DNA of 64,000 nucleotides from Zygnema circumcarinatum SAG 698-1b (GCA_037447605.1 CM074820.1:1674001-1738000), one strand, 5' to 3'; positions 794-20,348 are shown, numbered from the stretch's first letter. Notes: generated by a model from the letters alone, not told the origin. A program made the numbers and translations.

Positions 794-2450
794 TCTTTCT
801 CTCTCACTTTCTTTGTCTCTCTCAAAACCTGTATCTGTCTAGGTGATTGCTCTCCTGCCACTCACTCACCTTCTGACACCAGTCTCTTCCATACACTCAG
901 TCTCTCACTCTGAAATTTCGTTCTCCTTCTCTCCTCCCCTCTTATCCCTCTGTCCTCTCACATTCTCCACGCCCTATCCCTCTTCGTCTTGCCTCATCTC
1001 TCCCTTCACCTCTCCCTCTTCCCCCTCTCCCCGCTCCCCCCCACCCCCCTTCCTTCCCCCTCTCCTCCNNNNNNNNNNCCACCTGAATCTCAACCGGCCG
1101 AGTCAACACTTTCCGAGCCAAAGTCTCCACTTGTCTCGGAAACGTTGCCGAAAACAATACTGTTTGTCTATCCGGTCGTGTGTTCTGCACCATTCGAGCG
1201 ATCTGCGGTTCAAACCCCATATCGAACATTCGGTCTGCTTCGTCCATTACCAAATAAGTAACTCGCCTCAAATTTGTGATTTTTCCTGCTCCCGTACATA
1301 GAATGTCTATCATCCGTCCCGGAGTACAGACGACTATATGTGTTCCCCGTTTCAGTTCGCTGATTTGCGCAGCAACTCCTCCTCCTCCGTAAACCGCAAC
1401 AGCACTCAAATTTAAGGGTTTACTGAATTTCCGAATATCGCTATAAATTTGATGCACGAGTTCGCGGGTGGGAGCCATGATCATCGCTATTGGTCCGTCT
1501 CCTGACTCCAAATCCGGCTGCAAAAAAAAAAAAAAACAGGGACCCATTTTCAGATCATGAAAATGTTAGGATGAAGACGACTGAATGTGACGAGGGGGTT
1601 GAGAAAATTAGCGGTATTCAGATAGTAAGGGTTCAGAACTAGTGGGCTAAAACCTTCTCTATGGGGATGTTAATACTTGTGACCTCTTCCGGTTCAGTTT
1701 CAACACTAGTTATTTCCCTCATTCTGGACATCTACATGTGATATGTGTTCATGTTCTTCCTTACTTTGCTCTTATTCCCATATCTAAAGTCCAGTGAAAC
1801 TGGCCCTTATTACCCACCCTAAATCTAAACATAACCATTGACTCGAACCCTAAAACTCTGACTCCAATCTAAAACCCTTGAGCCGTTCCTCTACTCTATT
1901 CGTAACCTGACTGTGAAGACTAAGCCTAAATACTTACGCCTTGACAAAAACTCTGCGCAGAAAAAAAAACCCTTACCCTGATTCAAACCTTAACCCTAAC
2001 TCTGGCCCTAATTAAACCCTAACCCTAACCTAACCCCAACCTTACCCCTAAGCCATACCCCTAATCCTAACACTAACCCTGACCCTAACCCTAACCCTAA
2101 CCTCAAACCTAACTCTAACCTTGAAACTAACCCTAACCATTACCCTAAATCCAACCCTCACCATAGGCCCAATCCCACTAAACCCAAACCCTAACCATAA
2201 CCTGACCCTAGACTTACGCCGGCCATACCCCTAACCCTACCCTAACATCCAAACCTGCCTAACCGTGAGCTTAGCCCTAAACTCCAACCCTAACCCTAAA
2301 CCTAACCCTAACGCTAACCCTAGGCTAGCCCCACCCCTAACCCTAACCCTAACCCTCACCCTCACCCTCACCTAACCCTAACCCTAAAACCCTAACCCTA
2401 ACCCTAAAACCCTAATCCTAACCCTAACCCTAACCCTAACCCTAACCCTA

Positions 2451-2488
<38 letters not shown>

Positions 2489-5400
2489 CCTAACCCTAAA
2501 ACCCTAAACCCTAAGCCCTAAACCCTAACCCTAACCCTAACCCTAACCCTAACCCTAACCCTAACCCTAACCCTAACCCTAAAACCCTTACCCTAACCCT
2601 AAAACCCTTACCCTAACCCTAACCCTAACCCTAACCCTAAAACCCTTTCCCTAACCCTTACCCTGACCTTAACCCTAACCCGAAAACCCTAACCCTAACC
2701 CTAAAACCCTTACCCTAACCCTAAAACCCTTACCCTAACCCTAACCCTTACCCTAACCCTAACCCTAACCCTTTTGCCGGCATGCATGAGTGAGCACTGC
2801 TCTCCTGCTCACCTCGCATGCCCCGTTGCGCGGCGCCACATTCCCATCCCTGACAGCACGACAAGGATTATGTTTGTCAATTTCTTACCTAATTCCTGCC
2901 CTTTCTTCGAGTCAAATATTAGTCAGTCCCCCAGTTATTTGATAAAACGTTTTGTCCATTTCTCACCTAATGTCTCCTCGTTTGTTCGAACCAACTGTAG
3001 GAATCCCCTTAACTTGGTAAAGCACAGGGCGGAGCTCACTTTCAACTGCCACTCTCTATTTGCTTCATGGACCTATTTAAAGCCTCTTCAAGTCACAACT
3101 GAAGAAACCCATTCCATAAAAACCCTAAAAAACAGAGCTCTGGAGAAACAGATTTCAAGACCAGCAAAGTGGAGATCGTTCCCCGCACCGCTAAGCCAAA
3201 ATCATCACCACCATTGACAAGCATCGCTTTTATAGCTGTTCTATGTTTACATTTACACGTAATGTAAACAATGCCCCAAGACTCTTTATGACGTTCAGAA
3301 AAAAAAGGGGGGTAAATGTCGTCAGAGCATTGCAACAAGTAGATTTTTTTTGTGGCAGGATGTCAGGAACTTCGATTCAACCGAGTTCGAAGAAAAAAAA
3401 CCCTAAAATCTGAATGAACAATGCCATCAGATTTCTGCAACCCCTGTATGCATCTGTTCCATCATATTTCGTTCCGTTTTCCAACCCGTTAAGTTCCAAT
3501 AAACTCTTAACGCCTACAAATTTTGAGTTTAATGAGCCAAAGGCCATTAGAACCCTAAATAACCCCAATTCTCTAAACACCCAAGTTTCAACCAATTCGA
3601 CTAATCAACCAACCAACCAATCAATTAGTCAAATCAGTCAAACAGGTGACTAATTACCTGATCCATAATATGTCGCAGCATCGGCAGCACAAAAGCGAGC
3701 GTTTTTCCAGACCCAGTTTTTGCAATTCCAATGCAGTCTCTCCCACTCATAATGATCGGCAAAGCCTGTGCCTGTATCGGCATGGGTTTTTCAAACCCTG
3801 CTTTTTTTATCACCTCTAAAATCTTGTTACTGAGCCCCGTCTGATTCCATGTCTTAACTGGCTTCGGAACTTCCTTCCCTCTCAGTTTAAACTCGTGTTC
3901 CGTGCGATATTCCGTAACGTCTGCCTGAGACATCCGTTCAATCTCCTTCACTTCTATGTAGAAATTTTTACGGAACGGAGGGTAATCGATTTTCGAGTGG
4001 TCGACCGGCGGTAGTTTATCGACTTTTGAGCCTTTTTCACTCATCCTTTTGTAAAATTCGGCGTCATCTTCTTCTTCTGATTTTCCAGGACCCCCTTCGT
4101 CGTCTTTTTCCTCCTCCGCATCTGACTCGTCTCCAAACATTAATCCAATTGGACCCAATTTTGCCTTTTTCTTAGAATTATTATTACTAGTACTATTTAC
4201 GCCACCTGTTGCCTTCCGATTGGCTCCCATACCTTCCAAAAACTTCGCTCCGCCGATTTTTATACCGAAGCCCCCTTTCTTCTCCTTCCCTCCTTTCTTC
4301 AGAACCTTAAAAAACCTCTCCTCTTCCTCCTCCTCCTCCTCCATCTTCACGTCCATCTTTAAGCCTTCCTTGCCCCCTCCCTCTCTCGCTCCCACTCCCA
4401 CTCCCTCGCCCTCTTCCGCTCCTTTAGCAGTTAACTTCTGAACCTCTGGAAGCACCATCGAATTCATGAAAGCATCAAGAGGGTCTACCTCCTCCGCCTC
4501 CTCCACTCCTTCTCCCTCTTTCTCTCCACCTCTCCCTTTCTCTCCCTCTCCCTCGCCCACTCCTTCTCCCTCTCCCTCTCCCTCGCCCTCCCTCTCTCCC
4601 TCTCCCTCTCCCTCTCCCACCTCCTCCATTTTCACGTCTCCTGTCCCTTCCTTCGCCCCATCCTCCTCCTCGTCCGACTCGTCTCCCTCCAAAGTCCATT
4701 TCTTAACCTTCTGTTTCACGCCGCCTTCCTCTCCCTCTCCTCCCTCTCCCTCTCCCTCTCCGCTTCCCTCCTTCCCCTCTCCCCTCAACGCTCTCTCCTC
4801 TTCCTCCTTCTTCCTCTTCGTCTCCTGCCACTCCTGAACCCTCCTCCTCCTCTTCTCGATCTCCTCATCGAGCTTTTTCTGCTCCTCCTCCGCCGAAATT
4901 TCCTCCGATTTAAGGCTCAAAGTTTTTTCTTTTCTGGGCCCCTCCTCCTTTTCCTCTTTTCTCCGCTTCTTGCTCTCTCTCTCGTCCTCCTCCTCCTCTC
5001 TTGCCGCCCTCTCTCGCTTTTCTCTCTCTCTCTCCTTAGCCTTCTCTTTTTCTTTCCTCCTCTCCCTCTCCTTCTCACGCTCCCTCTCCTCTCTATGCTT
5101 CTCCCTTTCTCTTTCCCTTTCCCTCTCTCTCTCCCTCTCTTTCTCGCGCTCCCTCTCCCTCTCCCTCTCCCTCTCCTTCTTCTCCCGGTCTCTTGCAATC
5201 CCCCTCTCTATCTCCCTCTCCCTCTCCTTCTCCCTCTCTCTCACTACTGCAGCCCTCTCCCTCACCCGATCCCTCTCCCGCATTCTCTCCTTCTCCTTCT
5301 CCTTCTCCTTCTCTCTCTCCCTCTCCTTCTCCATATCCCCCCTCTCCCTCTCCTTCTCCCTCGCCTTCCTCTCCCTCCCCCTCCCATCTTCCTCTTCCCT

Positions 5401-5922
5401 CTTCCCCCTCTCCTTTTCCTTTTCCTTCTCCTTCTCCTTTTCTTTCTCTCCCTCCAACCCCCTCTCCTCCTGCCTCTCTCCCTCCCGCCGACTCCTCTCC
5501 TCTCTCCTTTTTTTCTCTTTCTCTCTATCCCCCTTCCCTCCCCTGCTTCTTCCTTTCTCTCTACCCCCCAAGCCCTCTCCCTCCCTCCCTCCCTCCTCTC
5601 CCTCCCCAACACCCACTCCCATCTCTCTCTCTCCCCCTCTCTTTCTCCTCCCCCCCTCCTCTCCTCCCTTCCTCCCGCCGTTCATCACCTCTCTCCTCCT
5701 CTCCGCCTCCTCTCCCGCCAATTCCCTCCCTCGCCTCCCCTCTCTCTTCCTCTCCCTCCTCTCCTCCTCTCCCTCCCCACTCCCGCCTCCCTCTCCCTCT
5801 CCCCCCCCATGCCCATCTACCGCCTTGCCTTCCCCCACTTCCTCCGCCTCCCTCCTCTTCGACCTCCTCTCCTTCCCCCTCCGCCCGCCGCTCGCAGGCT
5901 CTCCCCCTCCATCGCTGCCCAT
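1..5922 (-). CDS. RH42: DEAD-box RNA helicase RH42/Prp5/DDX46, 3'-partial (exons 5922-3658, 1517-1083, 687-<1)
   Basis: Long RE/KE-rich N-terminus followed by the Q-motif ([11 protein letters not shown]), [24 protein letters not shown] and ARGLD...[14 protein letters not shown] junctions restore the continuous protein (MDQ|PDLESGDGP and EIQ|[10 protein letters not shown]). Confidence 0.95.
1980..2772 (+). repeat. Interstitial telomere-like array (CCCTAA)n with CCCTAAA/CCCTAAAA/CCCTCA/CCCTTA variants, inside RH42 intron 1
   Basis: Read directly; near-perfect CCCTAA runs at about 2420-2455 and 2525-2580. Confidence 0.95.
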
Positions 5923-7110
5923 CGCCCTCTCCCTCTCCCCTCTCGCTCCCTCCCTCTGTCTCTCCCTCTCCCTTCTCCCTCTCGAACTCCCTCTCTCCCC
6001 CCCAACCCTAAAACAGAGTGCCTACACATTTGGAGCCGATTCCACGAGGTCGGCGATGGTTGGGTTCGGAACGGAGCCCTACATAGAACGCGGCTCATCT
6101 CACAGCGTTCCATGAGTTTGTACTGCTGCAAATCTGCTCTACGGTTAGACCGTCAGATTAACACCTGCATAGAAGTTAGTAATTCAGTAGTAGATGCTAT
6201 ATTTGTATTTCTTAAACTAAACGACCGAGAGCATGTGCACAGTCGCAGATTTTGTAACAATAACTGGAACTGCGTCTCATGTGACCGTCGGATAGTCATT
6301 CCTAACTGGCTGCTGAACGGGATTCAGACAGGGAAGGATTCTGTGCAATTAGAATCCGTAAAAATCCGTACTCTTTCAATCCGTACAGTTACCGTTGAGC
6401 CATGATGTTCGTAACTTTACGATACCGATTCTTCCGATCAAGAACGTGACGTGACATTAACGAGGGTTGTACCCTTCATGACCCGTCCAATGTTCCAAAC
6501 ATGCGATTTGTTCAACACGGCTCGGAAAACTCCAATTTGTGAACTGTCGGTTTGCAAGAATAATTTTTTATAATTAAACGGAGGAGGAGCTCCAATCACA
6601 TCACGCCACTAAGCAGCACGCGTATGGACACTCGTGGTTTCGTGGACACTCGTGGACACTCGTCACGTACACTCGTGGTTTCGAGATCATCAGAATTTCG
6701 TTCCTTCTAAAAACATAAAAATAAATAAAAAATAAGGAATTCTTACATGGTAGTTGAACCCAAGCGACATGAAGCATGGCTCAAGGACAATGGCGCAAAC
6801 TCAATTCTTCTCCTTAAACCCCCGCACTCTACACTCTATAAGCCCTGAGACCTGAGTTCCTTGCCCCTTGCCCCCTCCCTCGAACCCTAATCGCGTCCTT
6901 ACAACTACCGCAAGTACAACCGACTCTCGATAAAGACATATTCCCAACGACTGGACTGGATAAAGTTACAGAAACGGAGCCGTCACATCGCGCTCAAGTC
7001 CTTCCTATTGGAGCGGACCTCCCATGGTGACCCATCCCGACCCCATGACCCCATGACCCCATGACCCCATGACCCCATGCATCTATGCATACATGCGCGC
7101 ATGGGGGCGG

Positions 7111-10100
7111 TCAGGCGAGGGCGGCGCGCGCGGTGATGGCGGCGATGAAGCGTTCGGAGTCCGAGACGGAGCCGAACACGCCGCCCTGCACACGGGCATG
7201 CAGCGGTGAGAGGGAGGGAGGGAGGGAGGGAGGGAGAGAGGGAGAGAGGGGAGAGGGGAGAGAGGAGGGNNNNNNNNNNGAGGGGGGGAAGGGGGCCGGA
7301 GAGGTGGAAGGAGGGGGAGAGGGAGAGGGAGAGGGAGGTGGGGAGGCGGAGAGGTGAGCAGGAGAAGAAGGGAGAGGGTGAGTGGGACAGGAAGGAAACC
7401 GGGTGGAGGGAGAGGGGGAGTGGGGAGAGGGGAGAGAGGGAGAAGGAGACAGAGAGAAGAGAGGAGTAAGCGCACCTGCATCTTGACCATGTTGATGGCG
7501 GCGAGATGGTTACTGTAGTCAGTTGCTCCCGTGCAGTCCGAAAGCAGCAGGCACTCAAACCTGGTAGGGAGCAATACAGGTGGACTCGGATCCACTGAGA
7601 TCAATATTTAATAACTGTTGCCAGTGAGATCCTTGAGATCAACAGAGGGCAACTAGGGTCAACTGAGATAAGAACTAAGACAAACTAAAACTGAGATCAA
7701 CTGATACTAACTGAGATCAACCGAGTCTAACTGGGGTCAACCGAGATCATCAGACAGTGAGTATCACAGAGTATCAAACAAAATTTTAGGGCAGCAGGCT
7801 TCACAAAAGACAAGAAAAGAAAAAAAAAAAAAAGCTCTGACTGGTACACTTCAAACTAAAAAATTTCAGTTCCTGCGAGTCCTGCCTTTTTTTTTCCTCC
7901 TCCTCGATTTCCTGTTTTTTTTCTTCAGTCCTTTTTTCAGAACAATGTGAACAAAAGAAATTGCAAAACTGACCCGCGATCGTTCGCATCTCGCATCGTA
8001 GTGTGAACGCAGACATCTGTCGTAATTCCCGCCAAAACAATGTTCTTGATTCCCCTGCAAACAAAACCACTAGTTTTTTTTTTCCTTAAGTAATCGTTTT
8101 TCCGCACGCACTTCAGTTCAGAAACGAGAAAAAAAAATGCGTCTAACTAAGCTTAGAAATAATCAAAGTCATGTCAATGCACAAGAATAAATAGGGGAAA
8201 AGAAAGCACCTGAGATGAAGGAGAAGCTCCAAATCCGTGGCATAAAAGGAGCCCTGCAGGATGCGGTCATGAACATGTTCGGTCAGAAGTGAGACAGAGG
8301 TAGAGAGGGAGAGAGAGGGAGGGAGAGCAAGAGGGAGGGAGGGAGGGAGGGAGGGAGGAGGGAGGGAGAGGGAGAGAGAGGGAGGGAGAGCAAGAGGGAG
8401 GGAGGGAGAGGGAGGGAGAGGGAGGGAGGGAGAGGGAGGGAGGGAGAGAGAGGGAGAGGGAGGGAGAGAACGAGAGCCAATCAAAGAGAAGAGAGTGAAC
8501 TAGGGTTCTCTTTCTTTGGAGGGGAAAGGAAACGTTTATGGTGTTGTGGAGGTTCGAACTGGTGACCTTTCCAGGCTTCTCTATGACCGGCTCTCCCTCG
8601 ATGGGGTAAAGCTCGGGAATGATGTCCCACCCCTTCTCTCCTCTCACCTGCAAACATTGGCAAGGTTTGAACAGGGGTCCATTTCGAATATAGATTGACA
8701 CTCTTGCAGAACACAGCCTCTCTCCTCCTCTCGCTCTCTCCCACCCTCTCTCGTGCTCTCTCTTCTTCTCTCGTTCTCTCCCACACTCTCTGCCTCCTCT
8801 CCCGCACTCCCTCCCCTCTTGCCCTTCTCCCCTCCCCCCCTCCTCCCCTCTTTCCCCCTCCCTCCCCCCCCTCTCCCTCCCCNNNNNNNNNNCCCTCCCC
8901 CCCCTCTCCCTCCCTCCCCTCTCCCTCCCCCCCCTCTCCCTCCCCCCCGGCAGCATCGCTCACCAAAATGCGGCCTGCCGGACCTTTATCGCCGATTCCT
9001 GCTCCAATTTTTTGCGACCTCCATCGCTGCAAACTCAAAATAGTGAAAGAAATTGCAGAATTGGGCCTTTCTTATCTACAAGTCGCAACTCCAAACGAAT
9101 AAAAAAGGAAAAATTAAAAATTTTCATCTCCTTTGTCAAAAATTTCCCTCTCTTTCCTCACCTTATTCGCAGGGAGGTCCGCGAGATCTGGTCTATGGCC
9201 CTCACGCGTGTGAAACACGTGGTAGCCCAAATCGCGACACGTGGCAAGAACTCGCTTGATAGGCTCAATAGGAGCCTGCCACGTGGACACACACCCCCTC
9301 CCTCTCTCCCCCCTCCTACTCAGACTTCTTCTCAACATTAAAAAACTCGCCAAAATTCAAAAGAAAAAAGGGGAAGGGGGGTCGGGAGGGAAAAAAATGA
9401 AGTATTAGAAAGGAGCCTTAGGAGCCCTGAACCCTAATAGACCCAAGAAACTCTAGTTTCAATCCTAGAATTAAGTTTTTTTAAACAGTTTCCTAAAACC
9501 CTAAAACTCCCTTTTTTCTTTATCTTTGTACTTTTCCTACCTGTGTGAGGGAGAGGTCATATCCCATCTGTTCCACATAACCTCCTTTTCCGCAAAAATC
9601 TGTTTGCATATCAATAATAAGAAAAACCTGCAATAAAAAACTACCCAAAGAAATTGGGGGTTATAGTGAGAATGAAGTGTTCAGGTTTATATCAGATTTG
9701 AGTTTTAGGGTTTGGCCAAAAGTCAGAGTTTAGGGTTTTGACTTCCGTACAGTGTTGGAGGGTCGGAGGTCCGCATCGTACGGCCAGTTGTACGGATCCC
9801 CCTCTACAAGTGGAGCAGCAATGCCAAGTGGCACGCTCCCATTGGCTCCAGCAGCCTCTGTATAGGCCCTCCAACCGCCATACGAAGTAATGTCTTTCTT
9901 CCCCTGCACGAAAGACACAACTTTTAGGGTTTAGGGTTTTAGGGTTTAAGATGCGGTTTAGAGAAAGCGTTCATTAAAAGATTGTGGCACAGAAACCGCT
10001 ATAAACTAACAGCGTACGAACCAACTAAGACATGGAAACGCGGCCCTTGCCACATGGAAACTGTCAGAGACCATAGAGACATAGAACGGAGAGCTGTTTA

Positions 10101-11319
10101 ACGGCGAGACACAGAACAGAACGGAACGGCGCGCATGGAGCACCTGTACGATGTACGGCTCCGCGAGCACTCCGAGGAGCGCCTCGCCGCCCGCCAGCGC
10201 GACGCGGCCCACGGCCAGACCGGGGGGCTCCTGGAGGAGGACGGCCACCAGGCCGGGGGGGGGGACCTCCCACACCTGGGGGAGAGAGGGAGAGGGAGAG
10301 AGGGAGGGAGGGAGAGNNNNNNNNNNGGGTTGGGAGAAGGAAGGGGAGGGAGAGGAGGGAGAGGGAGGGAGAGGGGGAGGGACGGTGATGCGAGGGGGGG
10401 AGGAGGGGTGAGGGGGAGAGAGGGAGGGAGGGGAGGGGAGGCAGGGGAGGAGGGAGCGGGGATGGGGTAAAAGGGGGGGAAGAGAGACGAAGTTGGACAG
10501 GGGTAGAAAGAGAGAGTGCCAGAGAGAAGGGGCGAAAGGGACGAGAGACAGAGAAAGTGAAGCATAACGAGAGAGAGAGAGAGAGAGAGAGTAGGAATGA
10601 CAGAGAGAGAGAGAGAGGCCTACCTCCACTGCAATAGCCGCACCCTCCGACTCCTCCGTCACCCTCACCATGGCGGGATGCACATCATCGATGGAGTAGA
10701 GGCGGTACACAGGGGCGGTTTCAGTCTCCCTGAACCCCAAAATCAATTACCAAGATTATACTAAATTCTGAAGTAAAAGACATACCTTTAATTCAATCTT
10801 TGTAGTACTCTCTGTGCTGCTATTCACATTCTCGCTGGGATTTATTAGAAAACACAAAAAAAATTAAGCCACCGATCCTGTTTTAGGATTGCTTTATGCA
10901 TGACTACTCATTGTTACATTCTGGGCCAAATTTCAAATTTATAACATCTCTGTTGCCAAAAAAAAATTGCAATTATTCACGGAAACCCATATGTATCAAA
11001 AAAATTAAACTGAGGGCGCATGGAACCCCAAAACTGGAAACTTCAATGGCGATCGATCAGTGGCTGACTGCTATTCAAAATCTGAGGGGAGGGCTGTGCC
11101 CCCAACGGCAGCCATGGACCGCCACTGGCAATGTAGGCGCGGAGGGATGCGCACTACGTGACAAGCCGTGATGTGCGTGACGTGACGTGCATTCGCGACA
11201 TAATGTGATGCAGAGAAGGGAGGTGATGCGCGCCTGACAAAGGATGCGCCGGCGGTCAGGAGGTTGCCGTTGAGGGCGAGGCCGCGCATTAGGGTTCCGT
11301 TGACTGCTAACTGAACCAT
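7111..11319 (-). CDS. biuH: Allophanate-hydrolase C-terminal-like (GGCT-like) domain fused to biuret hydrolase (isochorismatase-like cysteine hydrolase), 368 aa. Exons 11319-11234, 10729-10624, 10275-10144, 9903-9751, 9627-9541, 9275-9162, 9026-8964, 8647-8567, 8253-8210, 8054-7974, 7560-7476, 7185-7111
   Basis: The spliced exons sum to 1107 nt with an open frame. N-domain: [14 protein letters not shown]...[16 protein letters not shown]...VEVWEVP...[10 protein letters not shown]...[11 protein letters not shown]-domain: [34 protein letters not shown]...[21 protein letters not shown]...[34 protein letters not shown]...[52 protein letters not shown], which closely matches my recollection of Rhizobium BiuH. 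The D-K-C triad is present. Confidence 0.9.
7600..7770 (+). repeat. Degenerate ~10-bp minisatellite (ACTGAGATCA-like) in an intron of the biuH-fusion gene
   Basis: Repeated actgagatca/accgagatca/actgagataa units read directly. Confidence 0.7.
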
Positions 11320-12056
11320 GGCGGCAGGGGAGGGGAGGAAGGGGGAGGGAGAGGAGGAGAGGGAGAGAGAGAGAGAGAGAGAGAGAACGGGAGGGGGGGG
11401 GAGGGGGGGAAGAGAGAAACAGGGGCAAGAGGGAGAGAGAGAGAGTAAGAGGGAGGGAGGGGAAGGGGTAGGGAGAGAGGGGAAGAGAGAGAGGGAGAGG
11501 GAGAGAGGGCGAGAAGGACGGGGAGGGAGAGTGGGAGGTGAGTAGGGAAATTTGCGAGTCGCCTCTTTTGTCGGGAGAAACGTTTTGGAGCAAGAAATCT
11601 GGTCGCTGGAAGCTGGTGAGTGACGTCATAACATGAATATTTATGATGGTGTTATGCCAAGAGTTGGATGCTATGATGTATGCTGATTTGTCGGCTTCCT
11701 AAGATACATGACCTTTCCCACCGACATCGGGCAGAAAGGTTTAATTTATCTGACCGTGATTGGCGACCTTGCCTTGGGGCCGCGCCGGTCGTACGAACAA
11801 AACATTTCCGGTCAGGTCCGCAGCCAATGGGAGAGGAGAATGCCTGCCACGTGGACCACGTGGGCAGGCGTAAAAACGACAAAGTGTTCATTGCTACAGT
11901 ACGGACAAGACGAACGGTTGTACTTTAAGCATGAAGAAAACGACAGAGGACGTACATCCGCTCACACTGTGCGAACGAATTTCCAGATTCGTCTTTGTCC
12001 TACTATGCTGTACCTTACGGCACTACAGTCTCTATCTGGTCGGACCATCGATTGGA

Positions 12057-16112: not shown

Positions 16113-17123
16113 GTGAGATCGAAAATGAGTAAGCGGAGTGATGAAGGGAAAATATTCTTCGATGGAACTAACTATGCAGCATGGGAGATATTCGCGAAGA
16201 TCAAGCTGCAGAAGAAAGGATGCTGGAAAATCGTGGAAGGTACATCTGCTAAACCAGCGGCGGCAGGACCAGAGTTGGAGAAATGGCAGGAATTAGACGA
16301 TGAGGCAAAATATCAGATTGCTAGCTTAGTAGATAAGAAGCATCTTATTCTGCTAGGGGGCAAGGATACTGCGAAGGAGATGTGGGATAAGTTAAAGGAG
16401 ATTTATTTGAAGAAGTCTATGGCTGTGAGAAATTCCCTCTGGACAGAATTGACGACCTTAAGTCTATCAAGGAGAGAGTCAATAGATGAGTTTATTTTAA
16501 GATTTGAAGTTCTGGTAAGACAGTATGAGGATGTAGGGGGAACTATCTCTGAGGAACAACAGGTCCATACGATCTTACGGTGTTGTGAAGAGAGAGCCTC
16601 CAGAGATGTCGGGAACATAAAAACTCAACAGTTGAGCGATGTAGAGTCAGTGAAAGCTATTTTAAGGGCAGCAGAATCTGAGCAGAACGATAAGCAGAGG
16701 TTTCAGAAGTTCATAGGTCATAGGCCTCAGACTAGTGAGGCCTTCCACAGTCAAAGCGGAGATGAGGATGGAGGAGAACAGGTGGAAGCCTACGCAGCCA
16801 ACTACAAAGGCAGAGGACGTGGAGCAAGAGGGGGTGCCTTCCGTGGAGGTCCATCGTTTGGAAGAGGACGCACAGGTCAGGCCCAGGCCCAGCAGGCAGC
16901 ATGTTTCAATTGTGGAAAACCTGGACATCTTGCCAAGGATTGCTGGAGCAGTTCAAGGAGTTCTGGAGCAGGAAATGGTGCAGCTACCGGAAGAGGCGTT
17001 TGGAGAGGCGTTAGTGGACAGAATGAAGACACAAGAGGAGAAGGATGTTTTGTGTGTGGAAAGCCAGGTCATTTTGCTCGGGATTGCTTTCATAAACCGC
17101 AAGGTAGAGGAAGAGGCGGCTGA
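16113..17123 (+). CDS. gag: Copia Gag with two CCHC zinc knuckles
   Basis: Copia-type N-terminus (FDGTNYAAWE...), CFNCGKPGHLAKDC and CFVCGKPGHFARDC, and RGG-rich linkers; ends at TGA 17121-17123. Confidence 0.9.
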   Translation: MRSKMSKRSDEGKIFFDGTNYAAWEIFAKIKLQKKGCWKIVEGTSAKPAAAGPELEKWQELDDEAKYQIASLVDKKHLILLGGKDTAKEMWDKLKEIYLKKSMAVRNSLWTELTTLSLSRRESIDEFILRFEVLVRQYEDVGGTISEEQQVHTILRCCEERASRDVGNIKTQQLSDVESVKAILRAAESEQNDKQRFQKFIGHRPQTSEAFHSQSGDEDGGEQVEAYAANYKGRGRGARGGAFRGGPSFGRGRTGQAQAQQAACFNCGKPGHLAKDCWSSSRSSGAGNGAATGRGVWRGVSGQNEDTRGEGCFVCGKPGHFARDCFHKPQGRGRGG

Positions 17124-20100
17124 AGAGGCGGCATTAGAGGACTTGCAGCTTCAGTGAGAAATCTTCAAGGAGGTTCAGAGGAAGATGAGGAGTCAGCTTA
17201 TCGTTTGGAGGAGAAGGAGCAACGTGCAGATTGGATAGTGGATAGTGGCGCATCACATCATATTTGTGCAAATAGAGACGAATTTGTGGAGATGAGGAAA
17301 TTGGCAGTTCCAAAGATCCTTCGGACAGCCAATGGAGGAGAGGAGATCGTGGATGAAGTCGGGACAGTGAAGCTGAATTTGATAATGCGACCACAACAAG
17401 AGGAAGTACTCGTTTCAGAGGTCATGTATGCTCCAAGCCTTGAAAAGAACCTAATGTCAGTGAGGCAGCTTGCTAGAAATGGCATGAATGTTAATTTCTT
17501 TGGAGATAGATGCATAGTGAGAAGGCCAAATGGGCACTTGGCTTTGGAGGCATATGATGATGGGAATCTCTACAGAGTTAGATGTGCAAGAGGCAAGAAA
17601 GGAAGGAATTTTATAGAGTCACATGTGTTGAGAGCATACGCTGCAGATGCTGATTTATGGCACAGGAGGTTAGGCCATCTCAGTTGGAGGTCGTTAGTAG
17701 CAATGAGTAAGAAGGAGATGGTGGCAGGATTGGAGGCTTTGAGCAGTAAGGAAATGCAGCATAGTTGTAAAGGATGTGAGGAAGGGAAACTAAAGCAGAA
17801 AGCATTAAAGCGGCTGGATGAGACCATTCGAACAAGGAAACGATTGGAGCTTGTGCACATGGATGTGTGCGCATCAGATGTAGAGAGCATTGGCGGCAAT
17901 CATTATTTCCTTACTATTGTTGATGACTACAGCAGGAAAGTTTGGGTGCGGATGATCCGGCATAAGCATGAAGTCTTCAAAGCTTTTCTGGGCTGGAAAG
18001 CAATGGTGGAGAGAGAGAGTGGAGAGTTAGTGAAAAGGATAAAGACTGACAATGGGGGCGAATTCAAAAACAGGAGTTTTGAACAGATGTGTGCAGAGAC
18101 AGGTATAAGGCAGGCATTCACTGCCCCTTATACACCGCAGCAAAATGGAGTTGCAGAGAGGATGAACAAGTCCCTCATGGACATTGCAAGGTGCAACCTG
18201 GTGGAGAGTAATCTTCCAGAAAACCTCTGGGCTGAAGCAGTCACTGCAGCAGCCTACATCAAGAACAGGAGCTACAACTCTTTGCTGAAGGAGCAGACTC
18301 CACAAGAAAGGTGGGCAGGTTCAAAGCCCAATATTTCTCATCTTAGAGTGTGGGGGAGTAGGTGTACTGTTTGGATCCCTCAACATCAGAGAAGTTGGAA
18401 GATGGCAGCTAGAGGGAGAACAGGTTTTATGGTTGGCTATAGCCGGGACAGTTACCAGTACAGGATTTATGACCCTCAGATGCAGCAGGTTATCACGAGC
18501 AGAAATGTGCAGTTCTATGAGGATGAGTATATTCAGAAGGAGGACAGGCAGCAGCCAAGGAGATTCAGTTATCAGCCCGCAGATGATAGTGATGAGGAGG
18601 ACACAGATGAGAGTGATGATGAAGAGACACCAAGGAAGTCAGCAAGGAAGGAGACAAGACCAGTGGAGACAGCGCAGGAGGAGCAGCCTCAAAGGGAGAC
18701 AAGAGGAGATTCCAGCGCAACAGAATTGAGGAGATCAGAGAGACCAAAGAAGCCGATAGTGAAGTTGACATCAGACAGAATTGGAGAACTACATATGGCT
18801 GAGGAGAAGAAAGGAGGGAGACATAGACTTTCAATTGGGACAATTTATTGCAATCAGGTGGTAATTGGAGAACCACAGAGTTATCAAGAAGCTTTGGAAG
18901 GAGAAGATGGAGAGAAGTGGAAAGGAGCAATAGATAGTGAGTGGAACAGCTTGTTGGAGAACAAAACTTGGACTTTGGAGGAGTTGCGAGAAGGGAGGAC
19001 AGCAATTGGCGCTAAATGGGTGTTCAAGAAGAAGCTGAAGTCAGATGGAAGCATTGAGAGATACAAGGCCAGATTAGTTGCCAAGGGATATAGTCAGATT
19101 GAAGGGATTGATTTCACAGAGACTTTTGCTCCAGTAGTGAAGATAGAGAGCTTGAGGAGCATGTTAGCTATTGCAGCTGAGAAAGGATGGCACATTCATC
19201 AGATGGATGTGAAGACAGCCTTTCTGAATGGAGAATTAGAGGAGGAGATATTCATGGAGCAGCCAGAAGGAAAGGTGGAGCCAGGAAAGGAAAATTTAGT
19301 TTGCAGGTTGAAGAAATCCATCTATGGACTGAAGCAAGCTCCAAGGCTTTGGTATGAGAAGCTTCATCAAGTGTTGTTGAAGGAGCAATGTGAGAGGTTT
19401 GATTCAGATCATTCAGTTTACAGAAGAGGAGTTGGTGAGAAAATGGTTGTTATTGGTGTGTATGTGGATGACTTGGTCATTGCTGGACCAAGCTTGCAGG
19501 AAATCAAGAAGCTGAAGAAGACTTTGATGAGACACTTTAAAATGTCTGACTTAGGGGAAGCTGAATACATTCTCGGTATCCAGATTCAGAGGGGGACAGA
19601 TGGATCTATATTTATGAATCAGAGGAAGTACATGGGGGAGATCTTGGAGAAATTCGAAATGAAGGATGCTAAACCAGTGAGTACCCCATTAGATGTGAGT
19701 GTGAAGTTGACAAGTGAAATGTGTCCCAGGACTGAGAGAGAAAGGGAGTACATGAAGGGGGTCCCTTATAGATCAGCAGTAGGAAGTCTGATGTATCTCA
19801 TGACTTCTACCAGACCAGATCTTGCAGCGGCTGTTGGAATGCTGAGCAGGTTTCTGAATGATCCAGGAAAGGCGCATTGGGAAGCAGTGAAGAGAGTCAT
19901 GCGCTATGTGAAGGGGACTTTGGATACAGGATTGAAGTTCCAAAAGATTGAAGGAGAGCCAACAGTGATTGGCTATTGTGATTCAGATTGGGGAGGATGT
20001 GTTGATACAGGCAGAAGCACCAGTGGATATATCTTTGTTTGTGCAGGAGCAGCAATTTCATGGAACAGCAAACTTCAGGAGTGTGTGGCGTTGAGCAGTG

Positions 20101-20348
20101 CAGAAGCTGAGTACATGGCGGCGTGTCATGCAGCGAAAGAAGCTAAGTGGCTGCAGCAGTTGTTTGCAGAGTTGAAGGAACCGCAGCCAAAGTTATTAAT
20201 GTGGAGTGATAGTCAGAGTTGCATTGCTTTAGTTAAGAACCCAGTTTATCACAAGAGGACAAAGCATATAGATTTGAAGTATCATTTCATTCGTGAGTTA
20301 GTGACCAAGAAGGAGATTGAGCTGAANNNNNNNNNNGAAGGAGATTGA
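17124..20348 (+). CDS. pol: Copia Pol (protease-integrase-RT-RNase H), in frame with gag
   Basis: WIVDSGASHH protease; GAG-pre-integrase LWHRRLGH; integrase HMD...TDNGGEF...QQNGVAERMN; RT RYKARLVAKG, QMDVKTAFLNG, YVDD; RNase H GYCDSDWGG...SSAEAEY...SDSQS...RTKHIDLKYHFIRE. There is a small assembly gap at 20328-20337. Confidence 0.95.
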   Translation, partial: RGGIRGLAASVRNLQGGSEEDEESAYRLEEKEQRADWIVDSGASHHICANRDEFVEMRKLAVPKILRTANGGEEIVDEVGTVKLNLIMRPQQEEVLVSEVMYAPSLEKNLMSVRQLARNGMNVNFFGDRCIVRRPNGHLALEAYDDGNLYRVRCARGKKGRNFIESHVLRAYAADADLWHRRLGHLSWRSLVAMSKKEMVAGLEALSSKEMQHSCKGCEEGKLKQKALKRLDETIRTRKRLELVHMDVCASDVESIGGNHYFLTIVDDYSRKVWVRMIRHKHEVFKAFLGWKAMVERESGELVKRIKTDNGGEFKNRSFEQMCAETGIRQAFTAPYTPQQNGVAERMNKSLMDIARCNLVESNLPENLWAEAVTAAAYIKNRSYNSLLKEQTPQERWAGSKPNISHLRVWGSRCTVWIPQHQRSWKMAARGRTGFMVGYSRDSYQYRIYDPQMQQVITSRNVQFYEDEYIQKEDRQQPRRFSYQPADDSDEEDTDESDDEETPRKSARKETRPVETAQEEQPQRETRGDSSATELRRSERPKKPIVKLTSDRIGELHMAEEKKGGRHRLSIGTIYCNQVVIGEPQSYQEALEGEDGEKWKGAIDSEWNSLLENKTWTLEELREGRTAIGAKWVFKKKLKSDGSIERYKARLVAKGYSQIEGIDFTETFAPVVKIESLRSMLAIAAEKGWHIHQMDVKTAFLNGELEEEIFMEQPEGKVEPGKENLVCRLKKSIYGLKQAPRLWYEKLHQVLLKEQCERFDSDHSVYRRGVGEKMVVIGVYVDDLVIAGPSLQEIKKLKKTLMRHFKMSDLGEAEYILGIQIQRGTDGSIFMNQRKYMGEILEKFEMKDAKPVSTPLDVSVKLTSEMCPRTEREREYMKGVPYRSAVGSLMYLMTSTRPDLAAAVGMLSRFLNDPGKAHWEAVKRVMRYVKGTLDTGLKFQKIEGEPTVIGYCDSDWGGCVDTGRSTSGYIFVCAGAAISWNSKLQECVALSSAEAEYMAACHAAKEAKWLQQLFAELKEPQPKLLMWSDSQSCIALVKNPVYHKRTKHIDLKYHFIRELVTKKEIELXXXXEGD

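Follow-up and report, generated by a model that had tools for sequence, protein, structure and literature searches.

What is a bacterial-type biuret hydrolase doing in the nuclear genome of a streptophyte alga, and why does a second, smaller domain precede it on the same polypeptide? These questions are raised by a gene on the minus strand at positions 7111-11319 of a 64,000-nt stretch of the Zygnema circumcarinatum SAG 698-1b genome (GCA_037447605.1 CM074820.1:1674001-1738000), hereafter called the window. BiuH, the biuret hydrolase of bacteria, belongs to the isochorismatase-like hydrolases with a Cys-Asp-Lys triad and cleaves biuret into allophanate and NH3. The window gene encodes 368 residues in which a domain of Pfam family AH_C, the family of the C-terminal domain of allophanate hydrolase (AH), precedes a BiuH domain. 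Our analysis indicates that the fusion is expressed, spliced and old, and that the small domain probably acts on a labile metabolite of the pathway in which BiuH works.

The two domains are encoded by one transcript. A three-frame reading of 7000-11400, combined with splice-site chaining, yielded 12 exons that join into an open reading frame (ORF) of 1107 nt (368 codons plus TGA), with GT-AG borders at 10 introns and GC-AG at intron 1 (10730-11233, 504 nt). This is the exon chain and two-domain protein that an earlier note on the same DNA had proposed, and RNA data bear it out. A public RNA run (X1) contained 29% of the words sampled from the 4.4-kb stretch, which is about the exon share, and a single contig mapped onto 6900-11600: it agrees with the exon chain at every base, is 1230 nt long, has a depth of 32.8, covers 7050-11333, and consists of 62 nt of 5' untranslated region (UTR), the 1107 nt of the ORF and 61 nt of 3' UTR. 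Because this one contig spans the full exon chain in a continuous frame, both domains lie on one mRNA and not on separate transcripts. Nine joints were listed for the contig, and all nine agree with the gene model within the ambiguity of the cut; in a second run from a different study (X2, kind unknown), eight of the nine were seen. The joints of introns 2 (10276-10623) and 7 (8648-8963) were unlisted, repeats being skipped, and were fixed instead by the contig's record offsets: positions 10728 and 10274, on either side of intron 2, correspond to records 250 and 256, and positions 9162 and 7184 to records 740 and 1096, with 355 bases in between that equal exons 7-11 plus one base. An alternative GT-AG splice of intron 1, which would take its donor after TTT and an acceptor 6 nt downstream, read ASF/TETAP across the joint and skip 515 nt, is excluded, as the contig skips 504 nt. 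The locus is a nuclear, spliced and expressed gene of a streptophyte alga.

Could the fusion nevertheless be an artefact, arising from bacterial contamination, from a mis-join at an assembly gap or from two adjacent genes chained in error? Three gaps do lie within the span of the gene, at 10317-10326 (intron 2), 8883-8892 (intron 7) and 7270-7279 (intron 11, 7186-7475), and the BiuH domain is ∼78% identical to bacterial proteins. All three gaps are intronic, however, and an RNA contig of exactly the predicted length confirms 11 spliced introns; the contig arithmetic rules out an exon concealed in any gap, since the offsets leave no room for one. In addition, the neighbours are a multi-exon DEAD-box helicase gene and a Ty1/copia element, and introns occur at the same positions in the alga Klebsormidium. 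The RNA contig and these common introns refute both contamination and two separate genes, and the chance that the fusion is an artefact of any kind is vanishingly small.

To identify the two domains, we compared them with protein families, solved structures and homologues in public databases. An orthologue found by a search with exon 4 (P0002; 369 aa, same architecture, 76% identical) stood in for the window protein in structure and database comparisons. Residues ∼137-365, the C-terminal ∼230 residues, are by sequence an orthologue of bacterial BiuH. Exons 5, 6, 8 and 11 match the Isochorismatase profile (PF00857) collinearly, exon 7 is without a match, and orthologues score 139-149 bits on this profile. 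Against the PDB, P0002 scores 390 bits with Rhizobium BiuH and 339 with Herbaspirillum BiuH, compared with 197 for TrtA, 76 for RutB and ∼30 for nicotinamidases. On the NCBIfam BiuH equivalog NF050097 (cut-off 370 bits), P0002, run in place of the window protein, scores 394.6 bits and a TrtA-like protein 237. A home-made hidden Markov model (HMM) built from 93 unfused bacterial BiuH sequences gives 451.7 bits for the window protein, 449.2 for P0002 and 169-210 for TrtA-like domains. These three sets of scores rule out identity as TrtA or as a nicotinamidase, and in the BiuH tree the BiuH clade is split from the TrtA-like domains with 100% support. The BiuH assignment of the earlier note thus stands, and the bacterial sequences to which the domain is ∼78% identical are the BiuH proteins of Verrucomicrobiota and cyanobacteria.

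The agreement extends to individual residues. Numbering in the window protein is that of BiuH plus 129 throughout, without an indel. Exon 5 (9541-9627) encodes IIDMQTDF, with Asp165 at 9612-9610, and also Phe170, Tyr176 and Tyr182; exon 6 (9162-9275) is identical to Rhizobium BiuH at 32 of 38 residues; and exon 8 (8567-8647) encodes EKPGK, with Lys271 at 8578-8576 and Lys274 at 8569-8567. The nucleophile Cys304 (8011-8009) lies within GITTDVCV in exon 10 (7974-8054), Gln344 is the last codon (7478-7476) of exon 11 (7476-7560), and exon 12 (7111-7185) ends with the TGA at 7113-7111; exons 7 (8964-9026) and 9 (8210-8253) are placed by the exon chain and the RNA contig. The catalytic triad is therefore kept, as D165, K271 and C304 (BiuH D36, K142 and C175), and so are the substrate residues F170, K274, Q344 and T300 (F41, K145, Q215 and T171). 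The earlier note had named the D-K-C triad and F41, K145 and Q215; these agree with the roles reported for BiuH (PMC5806882), and the equivalents are all present in the window. The positions that discriminate BiuH from TrtA, Tyr47, Tyr53 and Val218 (PMC7948467), are likewise retained, as Y176, Y182 and V347, and further equivalents are I299 and V303 (I170 and V174).

It is instructive to compare this domain with its characterized relatives. The BiuH enzymes of Rhizobium leguminosarum bv. viciae 3841 (PDB 6AZO/6AZN/6AZQ) and Herbaspirillum (6XJM) belong to the same family and have a catalytic domain of equal length, with no indels, but they are single-domain proteins of ∼225-245 aa, whereas the window protein adds 136 aa in front (the AH_C-like domain and a linker) and its gene, unlike theirs, has 11 introns. 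TrtA (6XIX) is only ∼46% identical to the window protein and reaches half the BiuH score, although TrtA-like domains are fused to BiuH in relatives of the gene. This last fact bears on the actual substrate: the cysteine-hydrolase domain might act in vivo not on biuret but on another ureide, be it triuret, carboxybiuret or a product of purine oxidation. Certain BiuH enzymes accept both biuret and triuret as generalists (PMC7948467), biuret has no obvious natural source for an alga, and the TrtA-like domain that Chlorokybus and chlorophyte relatives carry on the same polypeptide points to a triuret-type pathway. With all the BiuH-specific discriminators in place, and a BiuH score about twice the TrtA score, we consider a substrate other than biuret highly improbable. 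A tblastn search revealed no second BiuH, TrtA or amidase gene elsewhere in the 64-kb window.

The N-terminal domain, within the first 125 aa, is encoded by exons 1-4, which match AH_C (PF21986) collinearly at positions 1-26, 29-63, 64-106 and 109-122 of 123, with 20.9, 28.5, 26.5 and 14.8 bits, respectively; orthologues score 95-141 bits. The domain begins in exon 1 (11234-11319), which carries the ATG (11319-11317) and an NGTLMRG motif (11301-11281) and is followed by the GC donor. Exon 2 (10624-10729) ends with the codon of the invariant Glu64 (10626-10624), exon 3 (10144-10275) contains that of the invariant Glu103 (10161-10159), and in exon 4 (9751-9903) the domain extends to ∼9859 and is followed by the linker and, from ∼9819, by the BiuH domain. 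This arrangement leaves no room for a transit peptide, so the two-domain enzyme is probably located in the cytosol.

Which branch of AH_C does this domain represent? Its nearest solved structure is 5C5Z (c4763 of E. coli CFT073) at 127 bits, compared with 63 and 44 bits for AH C domains, and it is 52.5% identical to c4763. An AlphaFold 2 (AF2) model of the orthologue's N-domain, with a predicted local distance difference test score (pLDDT) of 89.9, superimposes with template-modelling (TM) scores of 0.83-0.87 on 5C5Z and 0.82 on the C domain of K. lactis AH; the next structural matches are the GGCT-fold proteins PH0828, YtfP, YkqA and GGACT. By sequence and predicted fold, then, the domain (residues 2-123) belongs to the c4763 type of Pfam AH_C and has the GGCT fold. 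Free-standing homologues are abundant (4503 clusters at E≤1e-5), and in the N-domain tree free-standing and fused copies form one 82-row clade, from which true AH tails are separated by a long branch with 100% support. The motif follows the same division: 63 of the 66 free-standing copies have NGTLM, as do 14 of the 16 fused ones, while GAH[LM] occurs in all 20 true AH tails sampled and is missing from the window protein. Because NGTLM is conserved in the c4763 clade, and because G8, N17, Y37, E64, W66, E103 and G118-W119-R120 are invariant in both AH_C clades and kept in the window, GTLM in place of GAHL is read from these alignments as the signature of a distinct conserved clade, not as decay.

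The earlier note's description of the N-domain as resembling the C-terminal domain of AH therefore holds in part: the AH_C match, the missing amidase domain and GTLM for GAHL are all as described, but the domain is not a stripped-down AH tail and belongs instead to the c4763 clade. No amidase-signature domain precedes it, and no amidase match was obtained in the gene or the window; on the allophanate hydrolase model TIGR02713 the orthologue scores 99 bits, against a cut-off of 511. The C domains of AH and urea amidolyase (K. lactis 4ISS and 5I8I; Granulibacter 4GYR) have the same PF21986 family and fold but are only ∼30% identical, carry GAH[LM], sit after an amidase-signature domain and form a separate clade. 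c4763 itself, an 'allophanate hydrolase-related protein', has the NGTLMRG motif and GGCT-like fold in common with the window domain, and its operon likewise contains a BiuH/TrtA-like cysteine hydrolase. It differs in being free-standing (129 aa, function unknown), whereas the window copy is fused to BiuH on one transcript, and in its operon it is accompanied by AllFGH-like proteins and carbamate kinase rather than by BiuH proper. Identity of the N-domain with TrtB is ruled out: TrtB groups with AtzH and HpxZ, AtzH is an NTF2/DUF3225 protein, and the NTF2 fold of this group is unrelated to the GGCT fold. In the full-length AF2 model (predicted TM score, pTM, 0.65), linker residues 132-138 have pLDDT <50 and there is no defined domain interface.

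The association of the two modules recurs in bacteria. One uninterrupted bacterial gene (P0022, 374 aa) encodes AH_C-BiuH, sits in an operon in which it overlaps both neighbours by 4 nt, and is followed by an ABC ATPase gene; a second (P0025) has the opposite domain order, with BiuH before AH_C. Because P0022 groups with the genes of a cyanobacterial metagenome-assembled genome (MAG) of Prochlorococcaceae in both domain trees, apart from the eukaryotes, it represents an independent fusion event, and the comparison indicates that BiuH and AH_C-like modules were fused at least twice more in bacteria. In the Prochlorococcaceae MAG itself (L001) the modules are separate genes of an operon with the order Bmp, permease, permease, AH_C (143 aa), BiuH, ABC ATPase, cupin-like ORF and TrtA-like, and no TrtB homologue was seen among its ORFs. 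The E. coli CFT073 operon (L091:28190-35403; NC_004431 4528189-4535402) consists of the cysteine hydrolase, AllH, AllF, AllG, carbamate kinase, c4763 and a cytosine permease, the AllH/F/G-like genes being DUF2877/FdrA/DUF1116, and Nonomuraea (L086) has the same gene order; the hydrolase in these two operons is BiuH/TrtA-like and 50-59% identical to both BiuH and TrtA. In two Leptolyngbyaceae MAGs a close free-standing homologue directly precedes the gene of a 466-aa amidase; other copies lie beside a urea carboxylase (one copy), after Bmp-type permeases, or in no telling context.

What, then, would the tethered domain contribute? By its strong orthology, the BiuH domain is expected to cleave biuret to allophanate and NH3. 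Hydrolases of the BiuH kind, like the AH amidase, act on a terminal ureido amide and leave an N-carboxylate (R-NH-COO-) that is unstable, and the AH_C-like domain would most likely bind and decarboxylate a labile neighbouring metabolite of this sort. Two candidate steps present themselves: allophanate to urea and CO2, the urea then passing to urease, or carboxybiuret to biuret and CO2. Either would parallel the processing of N-carboxycarbamate that has been proposed for the AH C domain, and would make the N-domain a functional analogue of the unrelated NTF2-fold helpers TrtB, AtzH and HpxZ; the TrtB family performs N-carboxylate decarboxylation of just this kind in the same pathway neighbourhood. 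With a little more than even confidence, and arguing from sequence and analogy, we take the whole protein to release NH3 from biuret and to decarboxylate allophanate or carboxybiuret. We favour a tethered decarboxylase because the cyanobacterial operon pairs an AH_C-like gene with BiuH without a detected TrtB homologue, because known pathways use NTF2-fold helpers, because the N and C domains of AH are described as acting one after the other (PMC5770610), and because the candidate substrates are labile: allophanate, carboxybiuret and N-carboxycarbamate all shed CO2 spontaneously (PMC6219798, PMC7948467, PMC7700744).

Several observations weigh against a decarboxylase. In the c4763 clade, Leu takes the place of the His found in the AH motif GAH. 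Fan and co-workers reportedly proposed in 2013 that this His (His492) is catalytic; if so, the chemistry is not simply transferable. The free-standing copy beside urea carboxylase is in a setting where an allophanate decarboxylase would be futile, the two copies beside an amidase fit a role downstream of that enzyme, and the flexible linker and undefined interface of the predicted model offer no sign of a fixed domain arrangement. Moreover, it is a matter of dispute whether the AH C domain has a catalytic role at all. C-terminally truncated AtzF keeps full activity, the tail being dispensable for it (PMC3944691).

The last point, together with the missing His and the flexible linker, is also what makes a non-catalytic N-domain worth weighing: a module for oligomerisation or docking, which might, for example, place BiuH by an allophanate-consuming enzyme and so channel the labile product. 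The truncated AtzF changes its oligomeric state while remaining active (PMC3944691), BiuH is tetrameric (PMC7948467), and the c4763 structure was solved with two chains. Yet N7, T9, N17, Y37, E64, E103 and R120 are strictly conserved in thousands of free-standing homologues and in both AH_C clades, a polar conservation that looks more like a ligand site than a surface patch, and free-standing proteins are found in operons that lack an amidase. We regard a purely structural role as unlikely, if worth keeping in mind.

The copies upstream of an amidase raise a further alternative, in which the N-domain provides the function of the AH C domain, N-carboxycarbamate processing, in trans to a tail-less amidase, so that BiuH, the domain and the amidase together would complete biuret mineralisation. 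Archaeal biuH genes cluster with gatA-like amidases, and the atzF of these archaea is described with truncated C termini (PMC12625717); the sequential action ascribed to the two AH domains (PMC5770610) would be in keeping with such a division of labour. No amidase occurs, however, in the cyanobacterial BiuH operon, in the CFT073 and Nonomuraea operons or in the 64-kb window, and the motif is unlike that of true AH tails. This arrangement seems to us quite unlikely, and a tethered decarboxylase remains our preferred account of the domain.

How old is the fusion, and is it peculiar to Zygnema? The earlier note had placed its novelty in the fusion and the lineage, and this does not hold: AH_C joined to BiuH is also found in Klebsormidium nitens (GAQ79543.1), K. 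subtile, three Spirogloea models, Netrium digitus, Chlorokybus, several transcript contigs and other eukaryotes, in addition to the independent bacterial fusions, so that the window gene is one more orthologue of a shared architecture. K. nitens GAQ79543.1 (UniProt A0A1Y1HND9), annotated just as 'Isochorismatase family protein', Spirogloea SM000196S05355, Chlorokybus Chlat1 1832/1831 and the Netrium digitus transcript are 65-72% identical to the window protein. Each of the seven introns in K. nitens matches, in alignment column and phase, one of the 11 introns of the window gene, which has four more. Because these introns coincide, the fused gene already bore introns before the Klebsormidiophyceae split off; on this comparison the fusion and seven of its introns are older than the split from Klebsormidium. 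In K. nitens (L089:3001-3029, DF236981.1) the public gene model begins 20 residues inside the AH_C-like domain while a K. subtile transcript has the full start, and the K. nitens start codon was probably called too late.

Two further architectures are seen among eukaryotes. In two tandem Chlorokybus genes (proteins P0015 and P0018) and a metatranscriptome sequence (P0006; L082:70-1935), the AH_C-like and BiuH domains are followed by a TrtA-like domain, the same order as that of the genes in the cyanobacterial operon. P0006 lies on a 3.6-kb contig beside an uninterrupted NIPA transporter gene, which suggests that it comes from an intron-poor alga. BiuH followed by a TrtA-like domain, without AH_C, is found in proteins of 450-480 aa from Chromochloris (P0016), Micractinium (P0021/P0023; L090:3001-7543) and the pelagophyte Chrysophaeum (P0024). 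None of eight intron positions in the 16-exon Micractinium gene coincides with one in the window gene, and introns are therefore uninformative on a common green origin. Another set of proteins (P0027, P0033, P0037, P0120 and P0124; 434-472 aa) has BiuH at the C terminus behind an N-terminal extension of ∼230 aa without a Pfam match, with a weak isochorismatase-like match in the extension of P0120.

In the BiuH tree the streptophyte domains form one clade (support 81-91), in which the window protein groups with P0002 and P0007 and then with Spirogloea, a position that points to a zygnematophyte-like host. A topology test (approximately unbiased test, p-AU 0.51) neither rejects nor establishes one clade uniting all eukaryotes. 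The backbone is poorly resolved in both domain trees, and the bacterial donor therefore cannot be named. The nearest relatives outside the eukaryotes being bacterial, at the ∼78% identity noted above, a foreign origin of the gene is plausible, as the earlier note had suggested with its horizontal acquisition; the transfer would be ancient, however, and descent from the plastid ancestor and a later horizontal transfer are equally open. Land plants gave no match among the best 120 matches, in agreement with reports that green algae have BiuH and land plants do not (PMC7700744; bioRxiv 10.64898/2026.06.29.735191).

From these relatives it would seem that algal ureide enzymes with several domains arose and changed step by step. 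We can offer one version of this history only tentatively, as a joint proposal to which we give clearly less than even weight. In it, c4763-type AH_C proteins would be decarboxylases of N-carboxy-ureides (allophanate, carboxybiuret), partners of BiuH-family hydrolases and the non-homologous counterpart of TrtB, AtzH and HpxZ. The green lineage would have begun with a three-domain AH_C-BiuH-TrtA enzyme leading triuret towards urea, which would persist in Chlorokybus and in the intron-poor alga; later streptophyte algae would have kept only AH_C-BiuH of it and core chlorophytes only BiuH-TrtA, while land plants would have lost it. If this were true, the loss in land plants would explain the poisoning of crops by biuret in urea fertiliser.

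The surroundings of the gene are rich in repeats. Introns 2 and 11 are GA-rich and intron 7 is of low complexity, and these three, the introns with gaps, are 79-87% purine or pyrimidine on one strand. Long purine/pyrimidine tracts of (GGGAGA)/(GAGGGA) type occupy 10276-10623, 8254-8566, 8648-8963, 7186-7475 and the 5' flank at 11320-11540, and all assembly gaps of the gene fall within such tracts. The mapped part of the 5' UTR is 11320-11333, with 48 more contig bases within GA-rich repeat, and the 3' UTR runs from 7110 to the contig end at 7050; it contains part of a (ATGACCCC)n microsatellite of ∼5 units at 7040-7080, which lies across the mapped 3' end of the transcript, ∼30-70 nt beyond the stop codon. 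Short interstitial runs of the plant-type telomere unit (TTTAGGG/CCCTAAA) occur in introns 3, 4 and 5, at 9920-9950, 9680-9745 and 9420-9510. The neighbouring DEAD-box helicase gene (942-5922, minus strand) encodes a protein whose N-terminal region is very long and rich in Arg, Glu and Lys, much as in PRP5/DDX46, and has an assembly gap (1069-1078) in one intron. The Ty1/copia retrotransposon (16113-20326, plus strand) has gag (336 aa) and pol (protease, integrase, RVT_2) ORFs that look intact, and is cut by a gap at 20327.

BiuH in green algae was already known, and the fused architecture is visible, without comment, in public protein sets. In the literature library searched, we found no paper that joins biuret with streptophyte algae, describes the AH_C-BiuH fusion or gives a function for c4763-type proteins. 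The closest algal relatives of land plants carry an old, intron-bearing nuclear BiuH gene. A bacterial BiuH gene has already been used to obtain biuret-tolerant rice (PMC7700744), and the streptophyte BiuH is a plant-lineage alternative to it. The main value of the fusion is the clue that it gives to the role of the small AH_C-like domain. The c4763-type AH_C proteins are an orphan family of more than 4,500 clusters at 90% identity with one solved structure, and their repeated joining to BiuH, by fusion in either order or within an operon, is a link of the Rosetta-stone kind: it suggests a function that can be tested for so large and uncharacterised a family, and it also has a bearing on the AH C domain, whose role is unsettled.

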